A program made the position numbers and the translations under genes. 64,000 nucleotides of DNA, from IMG/VR virus record IMGVR_UViG_3300045973_000169, positions 1 to 64,000 of that record, one strand, 5' to 3'. The notes beneath the pieces were generated by a model. The model had not been told where the DNA came from. It made no database searches and saw only the letters and a list, made by a program, of their open reading frames with translations. Positions 11,957 through 57,927 of the stretch are shown piece after piece. The stretch's first letter is position 1; each line of letters starts with the position of its first letter.

Positions 11957-12724
11957 TTATTTTAAAAATAACCTCGTTTTTAATTCGTCTTTACATTCAA
12001 GTTGAGGATTCTGGTCAAATCCCATTTGGTCCATTCCAATATTAACTGCTAGTATAAGAGACTTAAGATCAATCTCAGAAGTCTGACTAGCAATATGTGT
12101 AAGCATATAACTTAAAGCACCTTGATATTCTTTATTAATATAAGCATCAGCACTAGTCTGATTAGACATACATCCACTAATAAGGATAATATCACCCATC
12201 TCAGTATTAGCATTAATCTCTTTAACTGAATCAGATATAGGATAAATATCTTTTCTTTCAGTTTCTTCTATTACCATAAATCTATTCTGTTTCTCTAAAC
12301 TAAAATCTCTAACTCCATCACCTGAATGACAACAGTCAAAGATAACATACATTAAAACACCTTTAGGCAATTGAGATAGAATAGAATAAATGTCATCATC
12401 TCTAATAACACCGAAAATATTATAATCATAAGGAACAATAGCTTCATCTAAATAATCAGCCTCTCCACCATTTATAGCAGCAACTTGACATCCATGTCCT
12501 GAATAATGCCATATAAGTATATCTCCACTAACAGAATCTTTAATTAGTTTCCTAAGTTCAGTTGTAATATTCTTCTGTGTAGCATGATCATCTTTAAGAA
12601 ATGTAATATCAGTATACCCATAAGATCTAGCAAGATCAATCATATGATCAACATCATTTAAGCATCCTCTAAGAGAAGATCCATGATAAGCATTAATCCC
12701 AACAAACAATCCTTTGTTAGCCAT
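11957..12724 (-). CDS. Metacaspase / peptidase C14 family protein
   Basis: VGIN.Y...LRGCLNDV, catalytic His HYSGHG, catalytic Cys DCCHSG, SGC...QTSAD, QNPQL; start MANKGL after GGAGGA. Confidence 0.9.
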   Translation of the reverse strand: MANKGLFVGINAYHGSSLRGCLNDVDHMIDLARSYGYTDITFLKDDHATQKNITTELRKLIKDSVSGDILIWHYSGHGCQVAAINGGEADYLDEAIVPYDYNIFGVIRDDDIYSILSQLPKGVLMYVIFDCCHSGDGVRDFSLEKQNRFMVIEETERKDIYPISDSVKEINANTEMGDIILISGCMSNQTSADAYINKEYQGALSYMLTHIASQTSEIDLKSLILAVNIGMDQMGFDQNPQLECKDELKTRLFLK

Positions 12725-12866
12725 TGTTATCCTCCAAAGCTTTCTTAATAATATCAATTAAACTAGGGCCAAACTTATATAGTTTATGTTTAGCTCCATA
12801 TGCCATGACCAAGTGATATAGCTCATCAGGGAAATCAATGGTCCTCTTAGTTAGTTTGTCTTTCAT
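12717..12866 (-). CDS. Ribbon-helix-helix-like DNA-binding protein
   Basis: KRTIDFPDELY...LIDIIKKAL pattern; first gene of the minus-strand operon; AGGAG SD. Confidence 0.55.
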   Translation of the reverse strand: MKDKLTKRTIDFPDELYHLVMAYGAKHKLYKFGPSLIDIIKKALEDNNG

Positions 12867-27370: not shown

Positions 27371-28618
27371 ATGGCTAAGTTTATCCGTTTCAATGGTTGG
27401 GACAAAAGAGATTTAGAATGTATGTATGCTAATCCTGGTTATAGTAGTGGTATGGCTGATACTTATAGTGAAAGTGATAAAGATTTACATTATGAGTATG
27501 ATCCAAGTAAGAAGAAAGCTATACCTGCTGTTGAGCTTGAAGAGAGATTTAAAATTATCATTGATTCAACTGTTGTCTGTATGCTTGGTGTTGCTAAACA
27601 AATGACTCATAAATCTGTTTGTATTATATATGGCAGAGATATGTATCCTGTTTGTGAAGTTATCCGAGTGTTAGGATATAAGTTAAGAGGGACTTATATC
27701 TATATTGAAGGTGCTTCAAGATATACTTCTTCTGAAGAAGTTTTCAGGAAAAGATTTGCTGATGAGTTCAGTCCTATTTTTGAAAAGGCTGATAAGGTTA
27801 TTGGCTTTGATACTGGTTATCAAGGTACAATTCCAAGTAATATGATTAGAAAGAATCCTCATATTGCTAAATCAGTTAAAGATAAACATGTAATAAGGCT
27901 GATGGCTGCTACATCTGATCCTAAAGAGCATTGTATCTTTAGGGATTATATAGACACAGATAGCCAGTATCATTGGAAAAATGTAGTTAGTTATCTTGAA
28001 GACTTTTATAAGCCTATTACAAGGCCGACTAGAGTCTATAAGAATATGCCTATTCTGAATGTTGCTGATAAAGAATCTATTGAGAAAACATATGCTCTCT
28101 TGGGTTTAATAGCAGCTAAATGTAAAGAATTAGAGCCTATACTGTCTTATCTTCTGCATCCAGAAATTGATATAGTTGATGAATTACTTTCCTTAAAGAA
28201 AAAAGTTGAAGTTAAGCTGGAAGAAAAGAAAGAAGAAGCTAAAACTGATATTGATCCATTATTTAAACCAGGGGTTAAGGTTAAACTAAAAGAATCATCT
28301 AAATATTATGACCAATATAAAAAATATGGTGATCATTCTTTTGGTGTTATTCAAGAAGATTCTTGTGATACGTCTTGGGTTGAAGTTAAATGGCCTATAG
28401 ATAATCAGGAGTTTTGTTATCCAAAAGAAGATCTTATCATTGTAAATGGATTTGCTGTTGGTGATAAGATTAAGCCTAAAGCTAATGCCCCTTATTTAAT
28501 GATTGTTGGTTCATGGAGAGGAGAGGTTATTGGCGTAGATAGTGATATGTGCTCTGATAAACTTCAAGTAAGTGGTGGATATTTTGTTGATGAAGATTTT
28601 TTTGAATTAGATATTTAA
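27371..28618 (+). CDS. Hypothetical protein (415 aa) with C-terminal SH3/KOW-like repeats
   Basis: AAGGAGA SD; FKPGVKVKLK and FAVGDKIKPK repeat starts. Confidence 0.6.
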   Translation: MAKFIRFNGWDKRDLECMYANPGYSSGMADTYSESDKDLHYEYDPSKKKAIPAVELEERFKIIIDSTVVCMLGVAKQMTHKSVCIIYGRDMYPVCEVIRVLGYKLRGTYIYIEGASRYTSSEEVFRKRFADEFSPIFEKADKVIGFDTGYQGTIPSNMIRKNPHIAKSVKDKHVIRLMAATSDPKEHCIFRDYIDTDSQYHWKNVVSYLEDFYKPITRPTRVYKNMPILNVADKESIEKTYALLGLIAAKCKELEPILSYLLHPEIDIVDELLSLKKKVEVKLEEKKEEAKTDIDPLFKPGVKVKLKESSKYYDQYKKYGDHSFGVIQEDSCDTSWVEVKWPIDNQEFCYPKEDLIIVNGFAVGDKIKPKANAPYLMIVGSWRGEVIGVDSDMCSDKLQVSGGYFVDEDFFELDI

Positions 28619-30826: not shown

Positions 30827-30911
30827 GGGGTTGTAGCGGATCGGCCTTCTAAGCCGTGCACATAACACCGTAATGGATCGCATGCTGGTTCGAATCCAGT
30901 CAGCCCCTCCA
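30827..30911 (+). tRNA. Atypical D-armless tRNA-Arg(TCT)-like RNA
   Basis: GGGGTTG/CAGCCCC acceptor stem, CGGC-CTTCTAA-GCCG anticodon arm, GCTGG-TTCGAAT-CCAGT T arm, CCA. No D arm; long variable region. Confidence 0.7.
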
Positions 30912-31398: not shown

Positions 31399-31530
31399 GG
31401 GATTAGTAGAAAATTGGTAAATCGGGGTGAGCCCATGAGGGTAACCTGTCACTGTCTAACAGGGATAAATGAGTAGTTTTAAATAATGAAAATCTATTCG
31501 TTGTAGGTTCGAGTCCTACCTATCTCACCA
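31399..31530 (+). ncRNA. Expanded tRNA-like RNA (Asp GTC-like loop)
   Basis: tRNA-like ends (GGGATTAG...CTATCTC-ACCA), TGGTA D-loop, GTAGG-TTCGAGT-CCTAC T arm. The interior has three hairpins, including CCTGT-CACTGTCTA-ACAGG. Confidence 0.6.
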
Positions 31531-32282: not shown

Positions 32283-33762
32283 TGGATATTAATATTGAGA
32301 TTGAGTTAAAAAGAGATTCTACTAACTCATATCCTGGTAAAGTTAAGATTAATAATGCTAGTGATGGCAGAGTTAGATTAGCTTTAATAAATCCTGATAG
32401 AATTATTATATTGGATGGGAAAGAACTTACTCAAGCCATAAGTATTGTTATAGGAGAAAACTTATGAAAGGTGATGTTGTGTTATTGCCTGGAGATGTTG
32501 TCTTATTGTCTTTAGAAGAGAAGCCAACATCATTCTGCCATATAATCGACGTTCAATCAGATCCTGATTGTGTTAGTGGTATAGGATTTCATGTTACATT
32601 TAATCATCTTCAATTACCGGTTACTCAAATGACTTGGAAACTTAATCAGGATCATCTTAATCTTGGATGGACTATGGGTGGACAATTCATGAAATTTGAT
32701 TTGGTAAGTACACCAGTTAAACCTGTTGAAAAGAAAAAAGCAGAAGCTGTTAAAGTGGAAGATAACGAATTTATATGAAAGGATAACAAATGGCAGATGG
32801 TAAAGTTTACCCTATTGTCCCTGGCTTAAAGATGATAGGAGAAAAGGGCATAGAACGAATAGAATCGCTTGATGAAGCCTTTTTAATTCGTCTCTATGGT
32901 CATACTAAGGATTGTGTTCAGAAGATCCTTATACGCAAAATCTGTGAGCTTAAAGGGTATAATCTTGTTGTTGATGACAATGATCCTCTTATAGCTTAAA
33001 AAGGAAAGAATATGATTAATGTAATACTCTGTATAGTTTTAGCTGTACCATTTATTGCTATTTTTGGGACTGTCTTTTATAAGGTCTTTATCAAAAATGA
33101 AGTGCTAGATGGGGATATGGAAGACTTTGTTGGTGCTGAACCCGAACTTTCTGAGTTCGGAGAAATTACAATCGAGGAGACTGCTGATGGCGAAGAAGGA
33201 GTATAGTATTGAGAAGGTTGTTGCTGAAGTTTCAAGGCGCACAAAGATGGCTGGTAAAGTCATCGATGTTAAACGTGGTTCTGTTGGGATTGCTTTTCTT
33301 GGCAAGTTGGATTTTCTTGGTAAGATGGGCTATATTGTCCGTTTTGTTGGGTAAGTAATATGTATCCAGAATGGTATGGCCGCTTTAGTAGAATAGTAGG
33401 AAAAGACTTTGTTGTAAAGTTTATTGAAAGATGTATTGGGACAGTTGTTTGGGCTGAACCAGATGCTTCACATAAGGTTGGTGAATTCAGAAATGATTGG
33501 CTGACTGAAGCATTCACAAAAATTGATTATGAAAAGGAAAAAGAAATGGGAAAATTAAAAAAAGGTGATATCATCATTGGTAGTCAGCATAAGACTACCG
33601 GAGCAATCAGTATTGCTGCTGAACCAAAAGTTCACACAAATCTGCTTACTGCACAGCAGGAAGGCGAGCGTCTCGCCAAAGTTACAACTGACAAGAAGTT
33701 TGTTGTCCTTGAAGTAAAAGGTGTTGTCTCAGTAGCTACAACTATCTGGGAATAAGAAATAC

Positions 33763-33885
33763 AGCGCGATAGGCCAATAGGTAGGCCCCGAGAAATCAAG
33801 TGTCTCTGTATAAGAGAACGTTCGGCAATCAAAACTTTCACTCTTAATGACGAAATTCCAGGTTCGAGTCCTGGTCGCGCTGTCA
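33763..33885 (+). tRNA. tRNA-Lys(CTT)-like RNA with a ~48-nt insert between the D and anticodon arms
   Basis: AGCGCGA/TCGCGCT acceptor, GGCC-AATAGGTA-GGCC D arm, TCA-CTCTTAA-TGA anticodon arm, CCAGG-TTCGAGT-CCTGG T arm; no encoded CCA. Confidence 0.7.
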
Positions 33886-33944
33886 AATTTTAAGATAGCT
33901 TAAACGGTAGAGTATTACAGTTATTAACATGTAAGATACAATAC

Positions 33945-34460
33945 ATGGAGGTAACTGTAATGCCAACTTGCATAAAATGTAATGATGTTTTTCCTGTCTG
34001 GATGTGGATAGATGGAAAAAAGAAAAATTTAAATAATAGAAAATATTGCATTGAATGTTCTCCTTTTGGGTCACGTAATACAAAAAAACTTGAATTAGAA
34101 GATGATTCTCCTTTTAAGATTTGTATTGTTTGTAAAAAGCAATTTGAATATATAAGAGAGAAAGGACATAGAAAAACAAAATGTAATTCTTGCCACACAA
34201 GAGAAAAAAATCAGTCTGTTAAAATAAGAGCGGTTAATTATCTTGGTGGAAAATGTTCTATTTGTGGTTATAAGAAGAACTATAGTGCATTATCTTTTCA
34301 TCATAAAGATATAACACAAAAAGATTTTCCTATAGCTAATAGTAAAGGGTTAAAATGGGAGCTTATGCAAAATGAACTTGATAAGTGTGTTCTACTTTGC
34401 TCTAACTGCCATGCAGAATTACATTATCCAAGTCTTGATGTACAAAGTTATCTGTTTTAA
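33945..34460 (+). CDS. HNH endonuclease (same family as 30912-31253)
   Basis: LGGKCSICGY...FHH...KDF...ELDKCVLLCSNCH. Confidence 0.88.
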   Translation: MEVTVMPTCIKCNDVFPVWMWIDGKKKNLNNRKYCIECSPFGSRNTKKLELEDDSPFKICIVCKKQFEYIREKGHRKTKCNSCHTREKNQSVKIRAVNYLGGKCSICGYKKNYSALSFHHKDITQKDFPIANSKGLKWELMQNELDKCVLLCSNCHAELHYPSLDVQSYLF

Positions 34461-35463: not shown

Positions 35464-35476
35464 TAATATAAATTTA

Positions 35477-35554
35477 AGACTAGTTTCTGCAAACCACACA
35501 AACATGAGAAGCCCTGAACTGGGCAAAGTGGGGTAGAGGGAGAGAACTAGTCTG
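35477..35554 (+). ncRNA. Stem-C(A/T)GCAA element 1 (in the 5' leader of the DUF2828 gene)
   Basis: TAAG-start, AGACTAGTT/AACTAGTCT stem, CTGCAA, A/C-rich linker, ends CTG. Confidence 0.65.
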
Positions 35555-35600: not shown

Positions 35601-36977
35601 ATGGCTGCAAAATATACATTAACAGAAAATGGGGCTAAGACCCTATCCGATAGTGGCAATCCTTTAGTGAATTTGTTTTTTACTATTGGGTCTGCTCGTA
35701 ATAACCCTGAAGTAACAAGAGCTAACTTTAAGAAAGCTTTTGAGTTTGATGCATTGAGAGCTTCTGCTATAGTTCTTTGTGCTCGTGATATTCGTCATAA
35801 TGGTATGGGCGAACGTCAGATCTTTCGTACGCTTCTTAAAGACATGGCTGGTAGTGGTAAGATCTATACTCAGAAGATAGTTGAGCTTATCCCTGAGATT
35901 GGCCGTTTTGATGACCTCAAAGCAGTTGAAGGTACTGTTTATGAGAAGATGGCTATTGATATCTTTGCTAAGGCTATCCGTGAGCGTAATGTTCTTGCTG
36001 CTAAATGGGCAAAGCGTGAAGATAAGAAACTTCAGTTAGCTTTAGGGCTGAATGAAGCTGGACTCCGTAAGCTCTTAGCATCAATTCGCAAAGAGCATAT
36101 CGTTGAGGCCAAGATGTGTCTTAAGGACTGGAAATCTATCGAGTATGGTAAAATTCCTTCAGTTGCTGGTACACGTTATTCAAAAGCATTTCATAAGAAT
36201 GATGGTATTCGTTATCGTGCTTTCATTGATAACCCTGATACTAAGGTGAATGCATCTGCTTCTTTCCCTTATGATGTATATCGTATGTGGAGTAGCAGAA
36301 CTTGTCAGCCTCCTGAGATTAACAAGTATTGGAATAATCTGAAAGAGCTTGAGCTTTCAGGTAGTGTCCTTGCTATTGTTGATACATCAGATTCTATGAC
36401 TTGGTTTAAGGTTGCTGGTAGCCTTGTTCCAAGGGATATTGCTGTATCATTGGGCGTCTACTGTGCTCAGAAGATTGAGGGTAAGTTCAAGAATAATATG
36501 ATGACCTTCAATTCTAACCCTGAGTTCTTTACATTGCCTACAGGTGATGTATGTCAGGCATTTGATAAGGTAATGAGATCCAATATTGGTGGCAGTACTA
36601 ACATTCAGAAAGCTTATGAGAAGATTCTTTCCATGGCTCAGACTGTTAATGCTACTGATAAGGATATGCCTAAGTTCATCCTTATTATATCTGATATGCA
36701 GTTTAATGGCTGCACAGATAGACCTTCTGATACTGTCTATGACAATATGAGAAAGAAATATAAGGCTGCTGGATTCACTATGCCTAAAGTGATATTCTGG
36801 AATATGGATGCTCGTCATGATCAGTATCCTACTGCTTCATTTCAGAAAGAAACTGCTTTAATTAGTGGTTTTAGTCCTAATATTCTCAAGGCAGTTCTTA
36901 AGGGGCAAGATGTTGTTATCACCCCTGAAGGAATAATGAATGAGGCAATTGCTCCATTCATTGAGATGTTAAAATAG
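35601..36977 (+). CDS. DUF2828-family helical + vWA (MIDAS) protein, Ro60/TROVE-like by inference
   Basis: TENGA, RDIR..G.GER..FR, G..DDL, LAAKW..RE, MIDAS DTSDS, ISDMQF, VIFWN, SGFSP. Confidence 0.8.
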   Translation: MAAKYTLTENGAKTLSDSGNPLVNLFFTIGSARNNPEVTRANFKKAFEFDALRASAIVLCARDIRHNGMGERQIFRTLLKDMAGSGKIYTQKIVELIPEIGRFDDLKAVEGTVYEKMAIDIFAKAIRERNVLAAKWAKREDKKLQLALGLNEAGLRKLLASIRKEHIVEAKMCLKDWKSIEYGKIPSVAGTRYSKAFHKNDGIRYRAFIDNPDTKVNASASFPYDVYRMWSSRTCQPPEINKYWNNLKELELSGSVLAIVDTSDSMTWFKVAGSLVPRDIAVSLGVYCAQKIEGKFKNNMMTFNSNPEFFTLPTGDVCQAFDKVMRSNIGGSTNIQKAYEKILSMAQTVNATDKDMPKFILIISDMQFNGCTDRPSDTVYDNMRKKYKAAGFTMPKVIFWNMDARHDQYPTASFQKETALISGFSPNILKAVLKGQDVVITPEGIMNEAIAPFIEMLK

Positions 36978-37173
36978 ACCAGCCGAGCCTATGCTCTACC
37001 TAGTAGGATTCTTTCTGGGATTTGAACCCAGCAGAAGATACAAAGTGATTGAGTAAGCTCAAATAGGATTCATGAAGGTACTGCAGTGCATCATGATTAA
37101 CTGGTTGCGAATTAGTAGAGAGGGACTGTTGCTATTACGATTGAGCTTTACGTGTATAGATGCTTGTCCCTCT
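36978..37173 (+). ncRNA. Multi-hairpin structured RNA
   Basis: ACCAG/CTGGT closing helix with internal hairpins (TCTTTCTGGG/CCCAGCAGAAGA, TTGAG/CTCAA, TCATGA/TCATGA), then an AGAGGGAC/GTCCCTCT hairpin. Confidence 0.45.
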
Positions 37174-37180
37174 AGTTTTT

Positions 37181-37364
37181 GGGCACATGACGAAATGGTA
37201 AACGTGAGAGGAAAGTATATACTTAGTATTTATTTAATAAGTGGATTAATTGCCCATAAGTTAATTATTAGAAAAGTATATGACTACCTCTTGGTGATGA
37301 TGGTGACGGCTAGCCTTTATTATGTCATCTAGCCTTACAGGTTCGAGTCCTGGGGTGCCTACCA
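37181..37364 (+). ncRNA. Expanded tRNA-like RNA (184 nt)
   Basis: GGGCAC/GTGCCT-ACCA acceptor, ACG-AAATGGTAAA-CGT D arm, AGAGG/CCTCT anticodon stem extended by an ~80-nt AT-rich hairpin, long variable arm, CAGG-TTCGAGT-CCTG T arm. Confidence 0.65.
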
Positions 37365-37376
37365 ATAATAAATTTA

Positions 37377-37625
37377 AGAGAGATTACAGCAAACAAAAAC
37401 TTTTTTTAGACAAAAAACGATAGGGTTCGATTCCCCTAAGCCGGGTGGTGGTGAGATTTCTCTCTGTATTAAATTAGTAGATATATAAGGATCCATTCAG
37501 CAACTAAAAACTTTTTTAATTGATAAAAAAACAAAAAGTGATCCTGTCTTAAAGATATATAAGGAAGAGTTCAGCAATCCAAAAAACAATCAAATGCTAA
37601 CTTGAAAATGTTAAAAATCTTCCTG
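37377..37625 (+). repeat. Tandem array of three stem-CAGCAA-anticodon-loop elements (37377-37466, 37488-37546, 37562-37625)
   Basis: Each has TAAG start, a covarying stem (AGAGAGA/TCTCTCT, AGGATC/GATCCT, AGGAAGA/TCTTCCT), CAGCAA, AAAAAC, a small hairpin, and a CTG end. Confidence 0.8.
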
Positions 37626-37968: not shown

Positions 37969-38439
37969 ATGAAAGGTAATAAAAAGATCATCGAGACTCT
38001 GAACACAAGACTTGGAGAAGAGTTAACAGCTATTCACCAATATGTAGTTCATTCTCAAATGGTAGAAAATTGGGGCTATAGTAAACTTTCTAAGTATATT
38101 ATGGACCGAGCAAAAGATGAGATGCGCCATGCAGAAATGCTTATGGAACGTATTGTATTCCTTGAAGGTGCACCAGATACAACTAAATTGGGACCTATTG
38201 CAATTGGGCCTAAAGTACCTGATATGTTCAAAAATGATCATTCATCAGAAGTAACAGCAATAAAGAATTATAATGAAAGTATTAAACTTGCAGTAGCTGA
38301 AGGAGATAATGGAACAAGAGAAATCTTAGAGTCTATTCTTCGTGATGAAGAAGGTCACATTGATGCTATCGAAGCCAATCTTTCTCAGCTTGAACAAATG
38401 GGAACTCAGATTTATCTTGCTGAACAACTAGAGGACTAA
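37969..38439 (+). CDS. bfr: Bacterioferritin
   Basis: MKG...ELTAIHQY..H...NWG, DEMRHAE (heme Met), FLEG, DEEGHID ferroxidase ligands. Confidence 0.93.
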   Translation: MKGNKKIIETLNTRLGEELTAIHQYVVHSQMVENWGYSKLSKYIMDRAKDEMRHAEMLMERIVFLEGAPDTTKLGPIAIGPKVPDMFKNDHSSEVTAIKNYNESIKLAVAEGDNGTREILESILRDEEGHIDAIEANLSQLEQMGTQIYLAEQLED

Positions 38440-40508: not shown

Positions 40509-40843
40509 GATGGAAAAAGTTAAATGTGATTCATGTAAGGAAACTTTTACAATTAATATGTGGAGAGGTTATCTTAACCTTGAATATAATAGTGAATTAG
40601 AGGCATATGAAACAGTATGTCCTCATTGTGGGCATAAAGGATCATAAATGTTAACATTTTGTTTAATAGTTTTAATAGTTTATCTAACTCCTACTTTATT
40701 ACTTTTAGCACTTTGTGTGTATTTAAGAACAATAGCTAAAGCAGATATTGATATAACACTTAAGAATACATTTAGTTGGTCTTTTGCTTGGCCCTGGTGG
40801 GTAATTATAGGGTTGATTGAAGACTTTAAAAGGAGAAGAGAAA

Positions 40844-41671
40844 ATGATTCTAATTGATAATAGAGAAGTTAAGTTTGGTAAGTTTCCAAACGGTGAAAGT
40901 AATCTGAACTATAACACTATCGAATTCTGTCATGATAGTGATGTTATTCTTAAGTTTGAGTCTGATATTGATTTATTTAATCTTTATATTCTCAAGAAGT
41001 ATATGGATTCTTGTATTTGCTATAATAAGATTTCATTAAAGGTTCTTTATTTCCCTTACTCACGTATGGATAGAGAGAATGATTTCTATACTTTTAATCT
41101 TAAGTATGTTGCTCAGATGATTAATGATATGAACTTCTATGAAGTTATTGTTGGGGATATACATTCAGATGTAGCTCCTGCTTTAATCAATAACTATACT
41201 GGATATTCTTCTATTGATATTCTGTTTGAAACATTCAGAGATGAAATTGGTATTTCTGATTTTAGTATTATGTTCCCTGATGCTGGTGCACAGAAACGTT
41301 ATGGAACTGGCTTTGCTTATCATACTCTTGTTGGATTTAAAGAGCGTGATTTTAGTGATGGGCGTATCCTTGGAATGAAAGTCTTTGGTGATGTACATCC
41401 TGGGAAGCCTGTTGTTATCATTGATGATTTATGTTCTAAAGGTGGAACATTTATTGGAGCAGCCAAAGCTTTGAAAGAAGCTGGTGCTGGTGATATCTAT
41501 CTTATTGTTGGACATTGTGAGAATACTATTGATGAAGGAGCTGTCTTTACATCTGGACTCATTAAGAAGGTCTATACTACTGATAGTATCTATAGTAATC
41601 CTACAACTATTTGGAATACTTCTGATAGATTGTATGTCCATAAACTAATTGTACATGAAAAGAGATACTGA
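40844..41671 (+). CDS. Ribose-phosphate pyrophosphokinase-like (probable Adps, NARP1)
   Basis: FPNGE, YFPYSRMDR, DIHS, FPDAGA, IIDDLCSKGGTF, YTTDS. Confidence 0.88.
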   Translation: MILIDNREVKFGKFPNGESNLNYNTIEFCHDSDVILKFESDIDLFNLYILKKYMDSCICYNKISLKVLYFPYSRMDRENDFYTFNLKYVAQMINDMNFYEVIVGDIHSDVAPALINNYTGYSSIDILFETFRDEIGISDFSIMFPDAGAQKRYGTGFAYHTLVGFKERDFSDGRILGMKVFGDVHPGKPVVIIDDLCSKGGTFIGAAKALKEAGAGDIYLIVGHCENTIDEGAVFTSGLIKKVYTTDSIYSNPTTIWNTSDRLYVHKLIVHEKRY

Positions 41672-42156
41672 TGAATATAATTCAATCTCCTAAGAATACA
41701 AATGGATATGAAGTATATTCAATGTTTCTTGCTGGTGGTATATCTGGTTGTGATGATTGGCAGAAGTATGTATGTAATCAATTAGTTGAGCTATATAAGC
41801 CAAATGATGAAGTTTATATATTTAATCCTCGTAGAAAAGGCGACTTAACTAAAGAAGGAGCAATGGCTAGGAAACAAATTCTTTGGGAGTATAAGTATTT
41901 ACAATTATGTGATTTTTATGCATTTTGGTTTCCACAAGAAACATTATGTCCAATAACTTTATTTGAATTAGGAAAATACGCTAATTGTAATGCTGTTGTT
42001 GGTATTCATCCTGATTACAAAAGAAGATTTGATCTTGAAATTCAGCTCCCTTTAATAAGTAAAAAGATTAAGATCGTTTATGACCTTGATGAATTTGTTG
42101 AAGCTATTGCAGAAAAAATGTTATTAGAAAGGAAAGATAATGGAGAATGTAATTAG
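41671..42156 (+). CDS. Nucleoside 2-deoxyribosyltransferase-like protein
   Basis: FLAGGI..C.DWQ, FNPRR, QILWE, FWFP.ET.CPITLFELG. Confidence 0.8.
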   Translation: MNIIQSPKNTNGYEVYSMFLAGGISGCDDWQKYVCNQLVELYKPNDEVYIFNPRRKGDLTKEGAMARKQILWEYKYLQLCDFYAFWFPQETLCPITLFELGKYANCNAVVGIHPDYKRRFDLEIQLPLISKKIKIVYDLDEFVEAIAEKMLLERKDNGECN

Positions 42157-42622
42157 ATTTTATGGTAAGAGTAAACCTTTCTTTGAAGGTAGTAACTTTT
42201 ATCCTGCAAAATTTAAAGATAGTGCTGGTACTATATGGGATACAACTGAACATTATTTTCAGGCTATGAAGTTTGAAGCTGGATCTGAAATTCAAATTGG
42301 ACCAGAAAGCTTTATCCCAATTCGTAAGCATATACATGATCAGCCTACTCCTATGAAAGCAGCAAACGAAGGACGTAGGAGAGATTTTCCACTCCGTAGT
42401 GATTGGGAACAAGTAAAAGACCAAATGATGTATAATGCATTACGTTATAAGTTTACACAGAATCCAGTATGTAAACAGGCTCTTCTTGATACTGGTGATG
42501 CTGAGTTAATTGAAGCTTCTCCTGTTGATTATTACTGGGCAGAAGGTGCAGATGGTACAGGCAAGAATATGCTTGGTAAACTGTTAGTTAAATTACGAGA
42601 GGAGATCAGAAATGAACAATAA
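42140..42622 (+). CDS. NADAR (YbiA-like) protein
   Basis: SNFY, TEHYFQAMKF, R.DW..VK..M...L..KF.QN, LIEASP.D.YW, G.N.LG. Confidence 0.9.
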   Translation: MENVIRFYGKSKPFFEGSNFYPAKFKDSAGTIWDTTEHYFQAMKFEAGSEIQIGPESFIPIRKHIHDQPTPMKAANEGRRRDFPLRSDWEQVKDQMMYNALRYKFTQNPVCKQALLDTGDAELIEASPVDYYWAEGADGTGKNMLGKLLVKLREEIRNEQ

Positions 42623-44261
42623 GTTATTAGCTGTATTAGCATGTGATGGATATAAGATTGGTCATAAAGATCAAGATGCTCCTGGCGTTGAAAATAAGTA
42701 TTATACATGGACTCCTCGTTCAAACAAATATCTTCCTGAAGTTGAGAAGGTAGTTGTCTTTGGTGTTCAAGGTTTTATTAAGATTCATCTTCTTCAGTTC
42801 TTCAATGAGAACTTCTTTGAATTAGATAAAGAGTATGTTGTCTTTGAATACAAGCGTATTCTTAAATCATACTTGTTCAAAGAGGAGATTGATACAACTC
42901 ATATTGAGGAACTGCATGACTTAGGTTACTTGCCTTTAAAGATTAAAGCTATTAAAGAAGGGATAAGAGTCCCAATCAGAACTCCTGTTTTAACTGTTGA
43001 GGTTACTAATGGGAAATTTGCATGGTTGGGTGGATATATTGAAGATATTCTTTCTACTTCTCTTTGGCAGCCAATGACTGTTGCTTCTATTGCTTATGAG
43101 TATAAGAAACTCTTTAAAGAGTTTGCAATGGAAACTGTAGGAAATACTGAATTCTGTAAGTTCCAAGGTCATGACTTTAGTTATCGTGGCTTGATGGCTG
43201 GTCTTGATGCTATTCAGGCTTCAGGTTCAGCTTGGTTACCTTTGTTTGTTGGAACAGATAATATTCCATCTATTCCTTATATGGAAAATGTCTATGGAGC
43301 TGATAGCTCTAAAGAGATTATTGGGTGTAGTGTACCTGCTTCTGAACACAGTGTAGCTGAGACCTATATGGAATTTGATGATGATGGCAATCTTATCCCT
43401 GGTTGGGAAGATGAATATCTCCGTAGATTGATTGTTGATATTTATCCTACTGGGATTGTTTCAATTGTAGCAGATACAATTGATCTCTTTGAGCTTATTA
43501 CTGTTAAGTTAGTTGCTCTTAAAGAAATCATTATGGCTCGTGATGGTAAGACTGTCATTCGTCCTGATAGTGGCAACCCTGCTGATATCCTTTGTGGATA
43601 TGTTATTAAGAAATTAAATAACCCACTTAATGGTGATGCTGATAAGTACTATCTTCCTTTTGATCGTTGGACTGATGATGGATTTAATGCTTACCAGACT
43701 ACTGATGGAAAAGTTTATAACTTTGATCATAAAGAATTATCTATTGCTGAAACTAAAGGTGTAGTTGAACTTCTTTGGGAGATCTTTGGTGGAACTATCA
43801 ATGCCAAAGGATACAAAGAATTAGACTCACACATTGGTACTATCTATGGTGATTCTATTACTATTTCTTTAGCTAGAGAGATCTGTAAAAGACTTAAAGC
43901 TAAAGGCTTTGCTAGTACTAACTGGGTTGCTGGTGTTGGTAGTTACAGCTTGTTAGGACAGTTAAGTCGTGATAGTCTTGGATTTGCACTTAAAGAGACC
44001 TCTATTACTAGAAATGGTAAAGAGATAGCTGTCTTTAAGGATCCTAAGACTGATGATGGAACTAAGAAATCAGCTAAAGGACGTGTAGTAGTTGTACCTT
44101 CTCCTATTGGTGATGGTTCAATGCGTACTATTGATAACCTTACCAAAGAACAGGAAGAAAAGGTTGGAGCTTTCAACTTACTCCAGACTGTATTTGAAGA
44201 TGGTGTATTGCCTGCAGAAACAACATTAGCAGATATTCGTATTTGTTTAGGTGGAATTTAA
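42612..44261 (+). CDS. Nicotinamide phosphoribosyltransferase-like (probable Namat, NARP1)
   Basis: DGYK.GH, HDFSYRG, SVPASEHSV, SIVADT, IRPDSG, IYGDSIT, KDPKTD...KKSAKG. Confidence 0.9.
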   Translation: MNNKLLAVLACDGYKIGHKDQDAPGVENKYYTWTPRSNKYLPEVEKVVVFGVQGFIKIHLLQFFNENFFELDKEYVVFEYKRILKSYLFKEEIDTTHIEELHDLGYLPLKIKAIKEGIRVPIRTPVLTVEVTNGKFAWLGGYIEDILSTSLWQPMTVASIAYEYKKLFKEFAMETVGNTEFCKFQGHDFSYRGLMAGLDAIQASGSAWLPLFVGTDNIPSIPYMENVYGADSSKEIIGCSVPASEHSVAETYMEFDDDGNLIPGWEDEYLRRLIVDIYPTGIVSIVADTIDLFELITVKLVALKEIIMARDGKTVIRPDSGNPADILCGYVIKKLNNPLNGDADKYYLPFDRWTDDGFNAYQTTDGKVYNFDHKELSIAETKGVVELLWEIFGGTINAKGYKELDSHIGTIYGDSITISLAREICKRLKAKGFASTNWVAGVGSYSLLGQLSRDSLGFALKETSITRNGKEIAVFKDPKTDDGTKKSAKGRVVVVPSPIGDGSMRTIDNLTKEQEEKVGAFNLLQTVFEDGVLPAETTLADIRICLGGI

Positions 44262-49929: not shown

Positions 49930-50652
49930 ATGGCACGTTATGCTATAAGTGACATACATGGTTGTTTAAGAACCTTTAAGAAAGTGTTACGTTCAGTTGA
50001 CTTTAATAAGAGCGATACGCTTATATTACTAGGTGATTATATTGATAGAGGGTTAGACTCTAAAGGTGTTATTCAATACATTATTGATCTTATTGCAGAA
50101 GGCTATGATGTTATTCCTTTGTGTGGGAATCATGAACAATTCCTTATAGAGTCTATTGGTAATAATGCAGTTCAAACTATGTGGGAACGTAATGGTGGAG
50201 ATAAATGCCTTAGAAGTTATGGTGTTAATCATCCTAGTTTAATGCCACATGAACATATAAGTTTTATAAGATCTTTACCTCTTATGCATGTTGAAAGAGA
50301 TTATGTCTTTGTTCATGCAGGGTTAGATTTCTGTAAAGAAGATCCTATTGAAGAATCAAGTGATGAGACTATTCTTTGGAGTAGGATGCATCGCCTTGCT
50401 GGAGATTCACGTAGGAAGAAACTTGGTGGAAGAGTCTTGGTTACAGGACATACTCCTACAGATAAGAAAACAATGATTACAATGGCTATGGGTGAAGATA
50501 TGATTACTATTGACAGAGGCTGTGTCTTTGAAGGATCTAATTATAACCATATGGCTATTTTTAATCTAGATACAAAACAGTTTAATTTTATTAAAAATAT
50601 TGATACTTTAGAAAATGATTGGGTGAGTAGACATGGATATGCAGGACGATAG
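49930..50652 (+). CDS. Ser/Thr protein phosphatase family metallophosphoesterase
   Basis: SDIHG, LGDYIDRG, GNHE, FVHAG, GHTP, ID.GC. Confidence 0.9.
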   Translation: MARYAISDIHGCLRTFKKVLRSVDFNKSDTLILLGDYIDRGLDSKGVIQYIIDLIAEGYDVIPLCGNHEQFLIESIGNNAVQTMWERNGGDKCLRSYGVNHPSLMPHEHISFIRSLPLMHVERDYVFVHAGLDFCKEDPIEESSDETILWSRMHRLAGDSRRKKLGGRVLVTGHTPTDKKTMITMAMGEDMITIDRGCVFEGSNYNHMAIFNLDTKQFNFIKNIDTLENDWVSRHGYAGR

Positions 50653-51429: not shown

Positions 51430-52167
51430 ATGATAGGTGAAAAGTTTGGTAAGTTAACAGTTGTCTATTTCAATGATTTAAATAAGAGAAAAGAGAAACT
51501 ATGGTTATGTCTTTGTGATTGTGGAAAAGAAATAATTGTAAAAACAAGAAATCTTAAAATTGGAGCAACAAAAAGTTGTGGTTGTTTATCAACAGGCCCA
51601 AAAATTTCTGATCTTACTGGGAATAAATTTGGTGATTTAGAAGTTATATCTTATGCACATCAAGATAAATGGAGAACAAGTTTTTGGAATTGTAGATGTA
51701 TTTGTGGTAATTATACTGTTGCTAGTTCCGCAAATCTTAAATCTGGAAATCGTATTTCTTGTGGATGTAAACATGATGAATGGAAACATAATAAACCAAA
51801 AGGTCAAGATAGTCCACATTGGAATTCAGATATAATTGATAGAAATAGCAGACGACTTGACTATGAAGCAAAAGACTGGGCAATAAGAATTAAAGAACGT
51901 GATAAATATAAGTGTTTAGTTTGTGGTAAATCTCCAAGTGGAGAACTAACAAGTCATCATCTATATAGCTATAATGACTATATAGATTTAAGATATGATA
52001 TTGATAATGGAATTACTTTATGCGAGCAATGTCATTATTCTTTCCATAAAAAATATGGATTCAAAAAGAACACAAAAGAACAATTTAAGGAGTGGAAAAA
52101 TGAGTTATATGGCAGTAATAGCACGGTTGAAGAATGTCCGTGCTCATCCGAATGCAGACCGGATTAA
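51430..52167 (+). CDS. HNH homing endonuclease (paralog of 8141-8854)
   Basis: WLCLCDCG..KSCGC and WNCRCICG..SCGC; RDKYKCLVCG..SHH..NGITLCEQCH. Confidence 0.88.
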   Translation: MIGEKFGKLTVVYFNDLNKRKEKLWLCLCDCGKEIIVKTRNLKIGATKSCGCLSTGPKISDLTGNKFGDLEVISYAHQDKWRTSFWNCRCICGNYTVASSANLKSGNRISCGCKHDEWKHNKPKGQDSPHWNSDIIDRNSRRLDYEAKDWAIRIKERDKYKCLVCGKSPSGELTSHHLYSYNDYIDLRYDIDNGITLCEQCHYSFHKKYGFKKNTKEQFKEWKNELYGSNSTVEECPCSSECRPD

Positions 52168-53470
52168 ATTAGCTAATTGTTTAGGCTATCAAGTTATTGT
52201 AGGGCTTGAGGCTAAAGATGATGATATTGTTATTTTATTTCCTGATGATGGGCAATTAAGTCATGAATATATTTTTAATAATAACCTATATAACAAAGCA
52301 GAGATGAATAAAGATCCTAGTGTTAAAACTGGATTCTTTGATCATAAACGTAGAGTAAGATGTCAGACATTTAGAGGAGAGAAAAGTGAAGCTTATACTG
52401 CTGATATCAGAAGCGTGGAATTTACTGGGGTTGATATTGAAAGTCTCTATGTGGGTGTCCGTTTTGATGTTCTTAATGATATTAGCATTTGCAATAAGTA
52501 TATAACTCAAGCCACTAAGGATGCTGCTAATAAGAATGGGAATAAAGATAAGGTTAAACTTAATGTTATTCTTAAGAAAATGTTCCCTGAGCATATAGAT
52601 ACTGAACAGATTAGATTTGCAAGAGATGAAGATCTAATTGGATTAGTTACTATTACTCATAAGCTTCATGGTACAAGTGCTAGAACTGGATATATTAATA
52701 CTCCTGTTGAAGTACCTTTAAAATGGTATCATAAACTTTGGAATCAGTATGTTAAGTTAGTTGACTATCTCCCTCCTAAGTATACTCACGAGCAGAATGA
52801 AGCTTTATATTTTGCTCCTACTACTATCAAGAAATGGAAAACTATTTTTGGTACACGTAGGGTAATTAAAGGTCCTGTTAATGAAGAAGCAACTGATTAT
52901 CGTTCTTTATGTGCTAAACGATTAGCTCCTTTTATTGAAAAGGGTGAAATCTGGTATTATGAAATTGTAGGGTATGAAGATACTGGTGCTCTTATTATGG
53001 GGAGTGTTTCTACTAAAGAAATGCCTAAAGAATTCCAAAAAAGGTTTGGTGAAACTATTACTTACAAGTATGGTTGCTTACCTGGGACATGGAATATTTA
53101 TGTTTATCGTATTACTCATCAGAATGAAGATGGTGTTATCTATGAACTTCCATGGGCACAAGTAAAAGCTAAATGTAATAATGCTGCTATTAAGCATGTT
53201 CCTGAAATTGATGTTATTTTAACAGAAGTAGCTTTAGATGGTACAATTGATGTTGAAGTTTTAAAGCAAACAATTGAACATTACACTGAAGATGAAGATA
53301 TTGCTGAACCCCTTGATGCTTCTCATATACGTGAAGGTATCTGTGTTAGGATTGATAATCTTGAGACTGGTAAAATGAAAATATTCAAGAATAAAACTTT
53401 TGTATTTAAGGTGCTTGAAGGTATTGTTAAGGATTCTGGTGTAGTTGATACAGAAGAAGCTGAAGGGTAG
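52100..53470 (+). CDS. RNA ligase, Rnl2/DRB0094-like, with N-terminal tRNA-binding OB-like domain
   Basis: HPNADR, motif I KLHGTS, YEIVG, REGICV, K.K.F.F; AAGGAG SD before ATG 52100. Confidence 0.85.
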   Translation: MSYMAVIARLKNVRAHPNADRIKLANCLGYQVIVGLEAKDDDIVILFPDDGQLSHEYIFNNNLYNKAEMNKDPSVKTGFFDHKRRVRCQTFRGEKSEAYTADIRSVEFTGVDIESLYVGVRFDVLNDISICNKYITQATKDAANKNGNKDKVKLNVILKKMFPEHIDTEQIRFARDEDLIGLVTITHKLHGTSARTGYINTPVEVPLKWYHKLWNQYVKLVDYLPPKYTHEQNEALYFAPTTIKKWKTIFGTRRVIKGPVNEEATDYRSLCAKRLAPFIEKGEIWYYEIVGYEDTGALIMGSVSTKEMPKEFQKRFGETITYKYGCLPGTWNIYVYRITHQNEDGVIYELPWAQVKAKCNNAAIKHVPEIDVILTEVALDGTIDVEVLKQTIEHYTEDEDIAEPLDASHIREGICVRIDNLETGKMKIFKNKTFVFKVLEGIVKDSGVVDTEEAEG

Positions 53471-55948: not shown

Positions 55949-57169
55949 ATGTTTAGATCTTTAAATGATAAAGCCTACTTAGTTGGAGGCGCAGTACGTG
56001 ATCTCCTATTAGGCCATGAACCTAAAGATCGAGATTATGTTATTGAATGTACAGAAGCTGAATTTGAGAGAGTATTTCCCGATGCTGAAAAGGTCGGGAA
56101 TACTTTCCCTGTTTATTTACATCCTGAGACTGGTGATGAGATAGCTTTAACAAGAACAGAAAGACCAACAGAAACTAAATTTGGTGCTCTTGGTTCATAC
56201 CAAGGATTTGAAATTATTGGAGTTGGAGTGTCTATTCTTGATGATCTTAGAAGAAGAGATTTTACTATTAACTCTATTGCTCAAAAATATCTTACGAAAG
56301 AAATCATTGATCCTACTAATGGTAAGTTTGATTTAAAAAATAAGATGTTACGCTGTGTTAATTCTGAAGCTTTTAATGATGACCCTTTAAGAATCTATAG
56401 AGCTTGTAGATTTGCTGCTAGATTTGATTTTAAAGTTGAGATGCATACATTTAAATTAATGAGAGACAATTGTCATAATCTTTTCTTTGTAGAAAAAGAA
56501 AGAGTAGTTAATGAATTAAAGAAAATGTATTCTCAGACTGATAAGCCAGGTATATTCTTTAGGTTATTATTTGAGCTTGGTGGTATGGCACATCATTTTG
56601 ATCCTATTTTAGACCTTACTGTTATCCCTGCTGGACCTAAACAATACCATGGTACTAATACTGGGTTTGATCATACAATGGAAGTGATAGATAGATGTAA
56701 GGCTAATGGATTAAGCTTTGATTGTTTTATAGCTTGTCTATTCCATGATACAGGTAAAGCTTCAACTGATCCTTCTATATTACCTCACCATTATGGGCAT
56801 GAAAATGGGTCTTATCGTATTAATAAAGAGTTCTTTGCTGAGAATAGGTTTGATGCTAGTACGGTAGATTTAGCTTTAACTGTAGGGAAGAATCATATGA
56901 AGACTCATGTTATAACTAAGATGAGGACTAATAAAGTAGTTGATTTTCTTAGAGGAATTAGAAGATTAGATGAGTTTATTGATTGTTGTAATTGTGATCA
57001 TCCTTTTACTGATAATACTTTAGATTATATCAATCTTTTCAAACAAGTAAGAAAAGAAACTGTTGTTGAAATTCCTAAAGAAACAAAAGATAAATATGAA
57101 TTTGTTGGTAGGTTATACACTAAAGCCCTTGGGCAAAAGATAAAGGAATTTAAAGAAAATGGCAAATGA
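55949..57169 (+). CDS. cca: tRNA nucleotidyltransferase (CCA-adding class II) with HD domain
   Basis: VGGAVRD, DRD, DL.RRDFTIN, DDPLR..R..RFAARF, ERV..E, HDTGK. Confidence 0.9.
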   Translation: MFRSLNDKAYLVGGAVRDLLLGHEPKDRDYVIECTEAEFERVFPDAEKVGNTFPVYLHPETGDEIALTRTERPTETKFGALGSYQGFEIIGVGVSILDDLRRRDFTINSIAQKYLTKEIIDPTNGKFDLKNKMLRCVNSEAFNDDPLRIYRACRFAARFDFKVEMHTFKLMRDNCHNLFFVEKERVVNELKKMYSQTDKPGIFFRLLFELGGMAHHFDPILDLTVIPAGPKQYHGTNTGFDHTMEVIDRCKANGLSFDCFIACLFHDTGKASTDPSILPHHYGHENGSYRINKEFFAENRFDASTVDLALTVGKNHMKTHVITKMRTNKVVDFLRGIRRLDEFIDCCNCDHPFTDNTLDYINLFKQVRKETVVEIPKETKDKYEFVGRLYTKALGQKIKEFKENGK

Positions 57170-57563: not shown

Positions 57564-57927
57564 AACGTTTGAGAGAAGGTTTTACTTTTACACAAGACCA
57601 ATCAATAGGTATGACTTGTAGAGTAGAAAATAATGAAGTTGTCCTTATCCCTTATATAAGAGAGACTGGACAACTTCTATTTAGATGGATGGCAGAATAT
57701 GAAATTAAATAAAATAAAAGAATCAGGGATCTATTTAGTTATAGGACCACCTGAATGTGTTTCTTTGTTACCTACTGAAAATATATTATTTCTTTATCCT
57801 AATGGTGATCTTGTTATGGAAGGTAATAATTATATGGATTGTTTAAATGATGGTGAAGATGAGATAATTGAAGTTATCTGTCTTGCTAAATCAGAGAACC
57901 ATCCATCTTTGAGAGAAGGTGTTTTTG

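Follow-up and report, generated by a model that had tools for sequence, protein, structure and literature searches.

The 64,000-nt stretch of phage DNA analysed here (the window) carries at positions 33763-33882 a tRNA-like gene, which folds as a full tRNA of 120 nt with a 47-nt insert. It is a real, conserved RNA gene. The insert is a hairpin-closed form of a handle found in free small RNAs, several of which lie around a gene for a DUF2828/DUF7788 protein that starts 1.7 kb downstream of the tRNA-like gene and whose modelled fold is that of Ro60. The tRNA-like RNA suggests that the Ro/Y-RNA particle has a new variant based on a tRNA. In the reading we favour, with modest conviction, the RNA retains the insert, which would dock the Ro60-like protein onto the tRNA body in a Y-RNA-type particle that would serve phage RNA repair.

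The window is part of a 206.6-kb contig in IMG/VR, from a phage of about 207 kb. Loci of relatives (L-numbers) were fetched by means of the DUF2828 protein encoded at 35601-36977, and were drawn from Logan, ENA and JGI assemblies and from looser RNA-pattern scans of IMG/VR. No near-identical DNA was found among GenBank phages. A strict RNA-pattern scan and a protein-based scan of IMG/VR each returned the window's own contig only. All statistics on pairing and covariation in the family refer to the ten best-scoring members, i.e. the window RNA and nine from other phages; shuffled alignments and slid pairing partners served as controls for these statistics. In the insert-deletion test, the insert was removed in silico between nucleotides 28 and 29, and five members were then given to ARAGORN with default settings.

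The tRNA-like gene sits in a 190-bp gap between an open reading frame (ORF) of 131 amino acids, ending at 33755, and an HNH endonuclease gene. Its parts, with the basis of each assignment in brackets, are the following.

33763-33769, plus strand: 5′ strand of the acceptor stem, AGCGCGA, seven pairs (sequence).
33772-33787, plus strand: D arm GGCC-AAUAGGUA-GGCC with A14, G18 and G19, preceded by U8 and A9 (sequence and ten-member alignment).
33789-33790, plus strand: C27 and G28 of the outer two anticodon-stem pairs, with their partners C42 and G43 at 33851-33852 (covariation).
33791-33837, plus strand: the 47-nt insert, made of an A-rich linker, the closed handle, the UUCGGCAA motif and another A-rich linker (sequence and deletion test).
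33803-33817, plus strand: closed handle hairpin UCUCU-GUAUA-AGAGA (pattern and alignments).
33821-33828, plus strand: UUCGGCAA, the local form of the UYCAGCAA strand, which is invariant and comes after the handle's 5′ strand (comparison with free copies).
33838-33852, plus strand: inner anticodon stem UCA/UGA with loop CUCUUAA, then C42 and G43 (sequence and covariation).
33853-33874, plus strand: 5-nt variable loop AAAUU and T arm CCAGG-UUCGAGU-CCUGG, the latter at 33858-33874 (sequence).
33875-33882, plus strand: 3′ strand of the acceptor stem, UCGCGCU (33875-33881), and discriminator G73 (sequence).

The acceptor stem, U8, the D arm with G18G19 and the T arm with a UUCRANY loop are those of a canonical tRNA. 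C33762 and G33882 could form an eighth acceptor pair. The window copy encodes no CCA, G73 being followed by UCA. The anticodon loop (33841-33847) has U33, the anticodon CUU for Lys (33843-33845) and A37. The 7-nt loop with U33 and a purine at 37 closes a 5-bp stem that is built from two segments, nucleotides 27-28 and 29-31. C26 stands between the D arm and C27 G28; UCA represents nucleotides 29-31 and UGACG nucleotides 39-43. Within the insert the order is linker AGAAAUCAAGUG, hairpin UCUCU-GUAUA-AGAGA, ACG, UUCGGCAA and UCAAAACUU. The strand's folding energy (-37.1 kcal/mol) is better than that of shuffles (z -2.8), and the closed-handle pattern CTGT-N0-4-AAG-N5-10-YYCDGCAA occurs once in the 64 kb, against an expectation of 0.01.

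With the insert in place, the RNA is not the uninterrupted 73-95-nt cloverleaf that tRNA finders see. Neither default ARAGORN nor Rfam called the gene, and there was no RF00005-type call. When the insert was deleted in silico, default ARAGORN called tRNA-Lys(CUU). An earlier note on this DNA had described a tRNA-Lys(CTT) with an insert between an intact D arm and the anticodon arm. The full tRNA fold and the ARAGORN call bear out this identity, the string it quoted (GTG-TCTCTG-TAT-AAGAGA-AC, followed by the module) is present exactly where it was placed, and the D arm is intact. The true insertion site, however, is inside the 5′ strand of the anticodon stem, between nucleotides 28 and 29.

The stem in question has the pairs C27-G43, G28-C42, U29-A41, C30-G40 and A31-U39, and the insert breaks its 5′ strand between 28 and 29. 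We place the insert within the stem because the CG after C26 pairs with the CG that ends UGACG, and these pairs covary in the relatives. The split helix (27-43, 28-42) was paired in every scorable cell of the ten members; its pairs covary (CG 8, GC 1; UA 4, GC 3, CG 1), and the outer two pairs change jointly (CG/CG, CU/AG, CU/GG). In three of the first five members, the nucleotides directly 5′ of UCA could not have substituted for the outer pairs. Deletion of the insert led to canonical default ARAGORN calls in all five members tested: Lys(CUU) in the window, Ile(GAU) in L004 and L008, Asp(GUC) in L008 and Asn(GUU) in L067.

Other structures for this region were tried and rejected. ARAGORN in intron mode gave tRNA-Glu(UUC) with a 41-nt intron and a stem GAGA/UCUU; relatives do not preserve this stem, and it is the split-stem parse that covaries. 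A pairing CCGAG/UUCGG in the minimum-free-energy fold needs the A-to-G motif change of the window copy and cannot form in relatives with UUCAGCAA. The conservation of an 84-amino-acid ORF on the minus strand (33632-33886), which overlaps the gene, was explained by the covarying RNA structure. A scan for promoters and terminators around the gene gave nothing above shuffles.

RNAs of the same design were found in L004 (5938-6065), L008 (7972-8090 and 8097-8228), L067 (1284-1402), L210, L213, L215 and L094/L151, and degenerate ones in L143, L168/L211/L216 and L039. L039 has no anticodon arm, and L168/L216 have a non-canonical loop. Two further candidates from the pattern scans, L212 and L214, look like chance matches in coding DNA and were rejected. 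The covariance model scored the ten members at 60-131 bits and ordinary tRNAs at no more than 53 bits. The nine members from other phages, at 60-121 bits, answer the proposal of the earlier note that other DUF2828 phages be searched for tRNAs with the same insert. The tRNA bodies diverge strongly among members, with Lys, Ile, Asp, Asn and Glu-like anticodons.

In the ten members, 97.3% of the cells were paired and 19 of the 26 pairs showed compensatory changes; no shuffle matched either figure, and controls with slid partners were 38-49% paired. The acceptor, D-arm and T-arm helices were 97.5-100% paired. For the acceptor stem, all seven pairs were formed and six had compensatory changes. The covariation of the helices speaks strongly against a pseudogene. 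This alternative, a dead tRNA gene that was broken by a repeated, possibly mobile element and has no function, would fit the homing-type HNH endonuclease gene 60 bp downstream, the repetition of handle elements in arrays and the failure of ARAGORN and Rfam to call the gene. Yet at least 10 RNAs with different tRNA bodies share this insertion site and design, with compensatory changes in every helix including the split one, and 97% pairing is not expected of decay. We consider this alternative very improbable. The HNH gene itself (33945-34460; PHROG 2255, E 7e-40) is a possible homing element, which would shuffle the tRNA region.

The nature of the insert was revealed by comparison with small RNAs that carry the same module in open form. 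The handle of these free RNAs is a 5-7-bp stem with invariant A-U and G-C closing pairs, followed by single-stranded UYCAGCAA, and a free RNA has the form AAG-stem, N, UYCAGCAA, variable part, stem, CUG. When open, the handle joins the two ends of these RNAs, the short ones being about 60 nt long, and likewise those of permuted tRNA-like RNAs. The motif is UUCAGCAA in the handle of the relatives and UUCGGCAA in the tRNA copy of the window. The tRNA insert is this handle (AAG-stem ... stem-CUG plus UUCAGCAA) closed by a hairpin, in which the invariant pairs flank the loop in the order ..CUG, UAU, AAG... The hairpin had been interpreted as a 3′ end (..CUG) and a 5′ start (AAG..) of free elements, linked through UAU, and the invariant pairs in 50 free copies match this interpretation.

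Related phages carry a rotated form of the RNA, with an open handle and a closed acceptor. It begins with the open handle and CAGCAA, which lead into the anticodon arm, the variable loop, the T arm and the 3′ strand of the acceptor. A loop of 4-6 nt closes the acceptor, and beyond it lie the 5′ strand of the acceptor, the D arm, an A-rich linker and the 3′ strand of the handle. Such RNAs are present, for example, in L002 (7244-7367), L004 (7397-7522), L021, L027, L043 and L044. For a test of permutation, a hidden Markov model (HMM) was built from twelve rotated RNAs, and the tRNA-type RNAs were opened in the loop of the handle, their acceptor ends being rejoined. In native order the HMM covered only half of the tRNA-type RNAs. 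In rejoined order, four of the five scored aligned over nearly the whole HMM; the window RNA and L008a reached position 103 of about 125. Scores for rejoined versus native order were 54.8 versus 28.9 bits for L004 and 22.8 versus 17.4 bits for the window RNA. Alignment under permutation, which the earlier note had called for with the free copies, thus succeeded with the rotated RNAs, and its claim of circular permutants of one architecture holds for the tRNA-type RNAs and their rotated relatives. It does not hold for the short free elements of the window, which share only the handle and an anticodon-like hairpin and are not permutants of a whole tRNA.

A third wiring is found in L079 (8304-8406), where an open handle encloses a whole tRNA-like body, composed of D arm, anticodon arm with loop UUCCAAC, and T arm, through an acceptor-like stem. 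The permuted RNAs of L021, L027, L043 and L044 have near-identical bodies with the triplets CAU, GAA, UAA and UCU, while U33 and A37-A38 are kept. Similarly, L213 and L215 share one body with Asp GUC and Asn GUU, respectively. To judge from these sequences, the anticodon triplet evolves fast with the loop shape kept.

Four free handle RNAs lie upstream and downstream of the DUF2828 gene of the window.

35476-35554, plus strand: E0, with motif UUCUGCAA, just upstream of the DUF2828 gene and conserved in L002.
35601-36977, plus strand: protein of 458 amino acids with DUF2828 and DUF7788, vWA with MIDAS DxSxS, the presumed partner of the handle (Pfam and AlphaFold model).
37376-37466, plus strand: E1, a degenerate permuted form that has a hairpin and a T-arm-like GGG-UUCGAUU-CCC of 3 bp.
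37487-37546, plus strand: E2, with the handle and a U6/A6 hairpin.
37561-37625, plus strand: E3, with the handle and an anticodon-like hairpin, loop AUGCUAA.

When 50 short free copies were aligned, the CAGCA core was invariant. Their terminal stem has 7 bp. Next to the termini stand an invariant A-U and an invariant G-C pair; the others covary, with 99 double-change cells as against 36.7 in shuffles. A hairpin with a 7-nt loop is present in 46 of 65 short copies. In 33 of the 65, it has a stem of at least 4 bp, a 7-nt loop, U33 and purine 37; the shuffled mean was 2.25 and the shuffled maximum 6. The free elements had been said to carry an anticodon-like hairpin in the slot where the tRNA has its anticodon arm, and these counts agree with that. 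Most handle RNAs (132 of 167) have no tRNA body.

Handle RNAs were present in 65 of 85 DUF2828 loci, 163 on the strand of the gene and 25 on the opposite strand. A stricter search of bacterial contigs and contigs of metagenome-assembled genomes gave 32 and 6, respectively. Among loci picked by RNA pattern alone, 25 of 120 encode a DUF2828 protein within the fetched flanks. In L004, L008 and L067, the equivalent of the window's tRNA-like RNA lies 0.5-2 kb from the DUF2828 gene. This co-location and strand bias suggest that the handle docks the DUF2828 protein. DUF2828 genes with same-strand handle RNAs were likewise present on contigs (L217-L296) that had been binned to a wide range of bacterial phyla and to a single archaeal metagenome-assembled genome; many of these contigs are probably phage or prophage DNA.

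The DUF2828/DUF7788 family has thousands of members, mostly in phages, and DUF2828 proteins are also present in eukaryotes. Our literature search found no paper discussing the function of DUF2828; PHROG 850 labels the protein family 'RNA-binding protein'. The AlphaFold (AF2) model of the window protein had a mean predicted local distance difference test score (pLDDT) of 88.8 and a predicted template modelling score (pTM) of 0.87. In a Foldseek search with it, the top 12 PDB matches were all Ro60/TROVE proteins matched over the whole length (E 3.5e-9 to 3e-4; about 500-550 aligned columns), including Xenopus Ro60 and the Ro60 of Thermus phage phiLo, with 9KOP as the best. Template modelling (TM) scores were 0.48-0.68 for the top 12 and 0.56-0.68 for the top 11. 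By its model, then, the protein is a structural homologue of Ro60, with a HEAT ring and a vWA domain. Because of this homology, the handle RNAs may be regarded as analogues of Y RNAs. The link between DUF2828 RNAs and tRNA biology that the earlier note had drawn is strengthened by the Ro60 fold of the protein and by the tRNA mimicry of the Ro60 partner YrlA.

Two further observations concern this gene. Just past its stop codon, the minus strand has a perfect T-arm-like hairpin, CTGGG-TTCAAAT-CCCAG (37015-37031), where no tRNA was called. In L002, a Ter cluster (TerD/TerC/TerF-vWA) adjoins the DUF2828 gene.

Downstream of the RNA cluster, the window has a set of RNA-repair genes.

49930-50652: Metallophos phosphoesterase (Pfam).
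51995-53470, plus strand: RNA-ligase-like protein (RNA_ligase at 25.2 bits, just under the Pfam cut-off of 27).
55949-57169, plus strand: CCA-adding enzyme with PolyA_pol head, RNA-binding and HD domains (Pfam).
57919-59061: RlaP nucleotidyltransferase (Pfam).

The CCA-adding enzyme could supply the CCA that the tRNA-like gene lacks. Another candidate for this enzyme, the ORF at 27371-28618, was rejected, as it has no similarity to the enzyme of L002.

In the mechanism that we propose, the insert would stay in the mature RNA and dock the Ro60-like protein, making the RNA a Y-RNA-type partner. The tRNA body would give it defined ends, through RNase P, 3′ trimming and CCA addition by the phage enzyme, as well as stability and contact with tRNA-handling enzymes. 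The anticodon stem-loop would be displayed right beside the bound protein, and the particle would serve the tRNA damage and repair programme of the phage, near whose genes for RNA ligase, phosphoesterase, RlaP and CCA-adding enzyme it is encoded.

The same repair genes bear on a different explanation, in which the insert is intron-like: a nuclease of phage or host would recognize the handle as a processing signal and cut there, and nucleotides 28 and 29 would be joined by the phage RNA ligase into a normal tRNA-Lys. The permuted relatives would then mature via a circular intermediate, like the permuted tRNA genes of Cyanidioschyzon and archaea. Exact removal of the insert restored a canonical tRNA in every member tested, and RNA-ligase-like, phosphoesterase and CCA-adding genes are all at hand in the window. 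Systems based on the bulge-helix-bulge (BHB) motif combine insert-bearing tRNA genes, permuted genes and a shared junction motif, and the phage RNAs parallel them in all three. However, there is no BHB at the junctions: inspection around 33790|33791 and 33837|33838 found no 3-nt bulge, 4-bp helix and 3-nt bulge. No splicing endonuclease was found among the 27 window ORFs scanned against Pfam, and 47 nt is far below the size of a self-splicing intron. Most handle RNAs, having no tRNA body, would give no product. The handle and the CAGCA strand are the most conserved parts, as for a functional RNA surface, and a Ro60-type protein binds RNA but does not cut it. We regard excision of the insert as quite improbable.

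Several observations weigh against the docking reading that we favour. CCA is encoded in 7 of the 10 aligned members, the discriminators fit the anticodon in most (G73 with Asn, Asp and Glu; A73 with Ile), and the split helix restores a full anticodon stem in many. In the loci examined, moreover, the ordinary tRNAs of an array do not repeat the anticodons of its insert-bearing RNAs. A mere tether would need none of these features. The protein is not recognized as TROVE by sequence: Pfam gave DUF2828 and DUF7788 but not TROVE, and a profile against PDB sequences reached TROVE only at E 0.24. In sequence (AAG-stem, UYCAGCAA, CUG), the handle has no relation to the known Ro60-binding helix. HNH endonuclease and tail-fibre-like genes stand between the tRNA-like gene and the DUF2828 gene. 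Finally, the sequence was found in one DNA run, and no RNA run was listed.

The encoded CCA, matching discriminators and non-redundant anticodons fit a chargeable tRNA and thereby keep alive both excision of the insert and a further alternative. In the latter, the RNA would be a functional elongator tRNA-Lys with the insert still in place, which would be charged and read AAG codons, the handle serving only to regulate, protect or mark it, for example by shielding the anticodon loop or by recruiting repair after attack by an anticodon nuclease. All the tRNA landmarks are present and covary, canonical calls appear once the insert is deleted, and the phage encodes a CCA-adding enzyme. On the other hand, the 30S subunit contacts the anticodon stem, and a 47-nt three-way junction between 28-42 and 29-41 would, from the known ribosome structure, fall at this contact site. 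The discriminator of Escherichia coli tRNA-Lys is A73, whereas the window copy has G73 and no CCA; some members lack a usable anticodon arm; and the handle is mostly on RNAs without a tRNA body. The degenerate members (L039, L168/L216) and the absent CCA argue that the decoding part is dispensable. We therefore rate an elongator role as unlikely and keep to docking of the Ro60-like protein as the preferred reading.

A bolder possibility, which we hold to be doubtful, joins the two. The RNAs would be chargeable phage tRNAs (Lys, Asn, Asp, Glu and Ile, isoacceptors favoured by anticodon nucleases) with a built-in docking handle for a Ro60-like protein that guards the anticodon loop, senses it or helps to re-seal it, and the open handle would define a large unreported RNA family including the Class I RNAs of Dictyostelium. 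If true, DUF2828 proteins and handle RNAs would make up an ancient second Ro/Y-RNA branch across phages, bacteria and eukaryotes.

The neighbourhood contains other unusual RNAs. At 30827-30908, a tRNA-like RNA was called by Rfam only (33 bits); it has the anticodon loop CUUCUAA and a variable region of 23 nt, and some 4 nt stand where the D arm would be. Two long RNAs, at 31407-31530 and 37183-37366, close with a good T arm followed by an acceptor-like strand and CCA; the 100-180 nt on their 5′ side are unexplained, and they may be further non-canonical tRNA-like genes. In L006, a tRNA-His(GUG)-like gene (5474-5596; Rfam tRNA, 52 bits) carries a different insert of about 50 nt in its anticodon loop, directly upstream of a free handle RNA; this insert lacks CAGCAA and forms two hairpins, of which one has a T-loop-like UUCAAGU. 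Elsewhere in the window are a gene for a caspase-like Peptidase_C14 protein (11957-12757, minus strand) and, at 40817-44261 and 37969-38439, genes for nicotinamide adenine dinucleotide salvage (phosphoribosyl-pyrophosphate-synthetase-like and NAPRTase/NAMPT) and a ferritin-like protein.

Animals, bacteria and a few phages are known to have Ro60/Y-RNA particles; the tRNA mimicry of YrlA is still unexplained. DUF2828/DUF7788 would represent a much larger, divergent Ro60-like family with its own abundant candidate partner RNAs. The handle RNAs share one design in three wirings, and some are genuine-looking tRNAs that bear a putative protein handle in the anticodon stem. They may offer a way into the question of why Ro-type proteins are tied to the tRNA shape, and they provide natural circular permutants for structure-function work. 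The DUF2828 protein is in addition a candidate partner for the orphan Class I RNAs of social amoebae.

Among known systems, two-piece tmRNA (transfer-messenger RNA) genes are a bacterial case of a tRNA-like RNA in both standard and circularly permuted gene order. A tag reading frame, pseudoknots and SmpB binding belong to tmRNA, unlike the window RNA, which has no such features, and ARAGORN found no tmRNA. Group I introns, self-splicing ribozymes of some 200 nt or more, interrupt tRNA genes in the anticodon loop; the present insert has 47 nt, lies in a stem rather than in that loop and matched no intron family in Rfam. Tallying with BHB-processed intron-containing, split and permuted tRNA genes of archaea and Cyanidioschyzon merolae, the phage RNAs have inserts at odd positions whose exact removal restores a tRNA, their permuted relatives put the 3′ half before the 5′ half, and one shared motif marks the junction. 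They differ in their phage or bacterial setting and in that the motif is also on many body-less RNAs and is tied to the gene of an RNA-binding protein.

The Class I RNAs of Dictyostelium, of about 60 nt, start with AAG, end with CUGU and have a covarying end stem of about 6 bp (RF01414; Kjellin et al. 2021, PMC7919456). A conserved 11-nt motif (..UUACAGCAA) comes right after the 5′ strand and is followed by a variable middle, and these RNAs have been described as present in no other organism. The 50 free handle RNAs match this whole published anatomy, including the AAG/CUGU ends and the covarying stem; examples are window 37487-37546, 37376-37466 and 37561-37625, and L002 14890-14948. RF01414 was the top Rfam match on free handle RNAs (25.8, 24.7, 18.0 and 13.7 bits), with all scores under the gathering score of 41.5, and its consensus scored 14.1 bits on an HMM of the phage RNAs, against a shuffled maximum of 4.8. 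The motif shares 8-9 of 11 bases (UUACAGCAA against UUCAGCAA, or UUCGGCAA in the window tRNA). In contrast to the phage RNAs, those of Class I come from eukaryotes and possess a promoter element of their own, and no binding of them by a DUF2828 protein is known; the window tRNA carries the module solely in the permuted, closed form with UUCGGCAA. By analogy, Class I RNAs may be partners of a DUF2828/Ro60-like protein.

The Ro60 of phage phiLo binds phage Y-like RNAs and host PNPase (PMC12135203; PDB 9KOP, 9L5Y). Like the window, this phage has a Ro60-fold protein with several adjacent partner RNAs (Yrl1 and Yrl2; putative partners in the window); unlike handle RNAs, these were chosen by a CGAA motif and stem-loop shape, not by a CAGCAA handle, and no tRNA with an embedded handle is described in that paper. 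TROVE proteins of jumbo phages have been assigned to RNA repair in published work.

Ro60 binds Y RNAs through the stem formed by the RNA ends, and the bacterial and phage YrlA has a tRNA-like domain (PMC4201824). YrlA-type Y RNAs thus are Ro60 partners that mimic tRNA, and the order of the arms differs between YrlA and Yrn1 (Chen et al. 2014, PMC4201824). RF02553, the Rfam model of YrlA, had no hit at the window locus (gathering score 69 bits) and sub-threshold matches to permuted relatives (32.9 and 28 bits). A gene beside that of a Ro60-fold protein is the Y RNA feature found in the window; a conserved bulged end-stem, a TROVE sequence and a model match are absent. The partner is DUF2828/DUF7788 instead of a Pfam TROVE protein. 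The window RNA also differs from YrlA in having true tRNA ends (an open acceptor, with CCA in most relatives) and a full anticodon stem-loop, and in a handle closed into a hairpin within the anticodon stem, so that the ends sit in the acceptor stem. Both are nevertheless small RNAs encoded beside a gene for a Ro60-fold protein, both combine a protein-binding stem (putative in the window RNA) with a tRNA-like domain of T arm, D arm and acceptor-like stem, and both are associated with RNA-repair genes. The tRNA mimicry of YrlA is the closest precedent, and by this analogy the window RNA would work most like a YrlA-type Y RNA with the opposite wiring.

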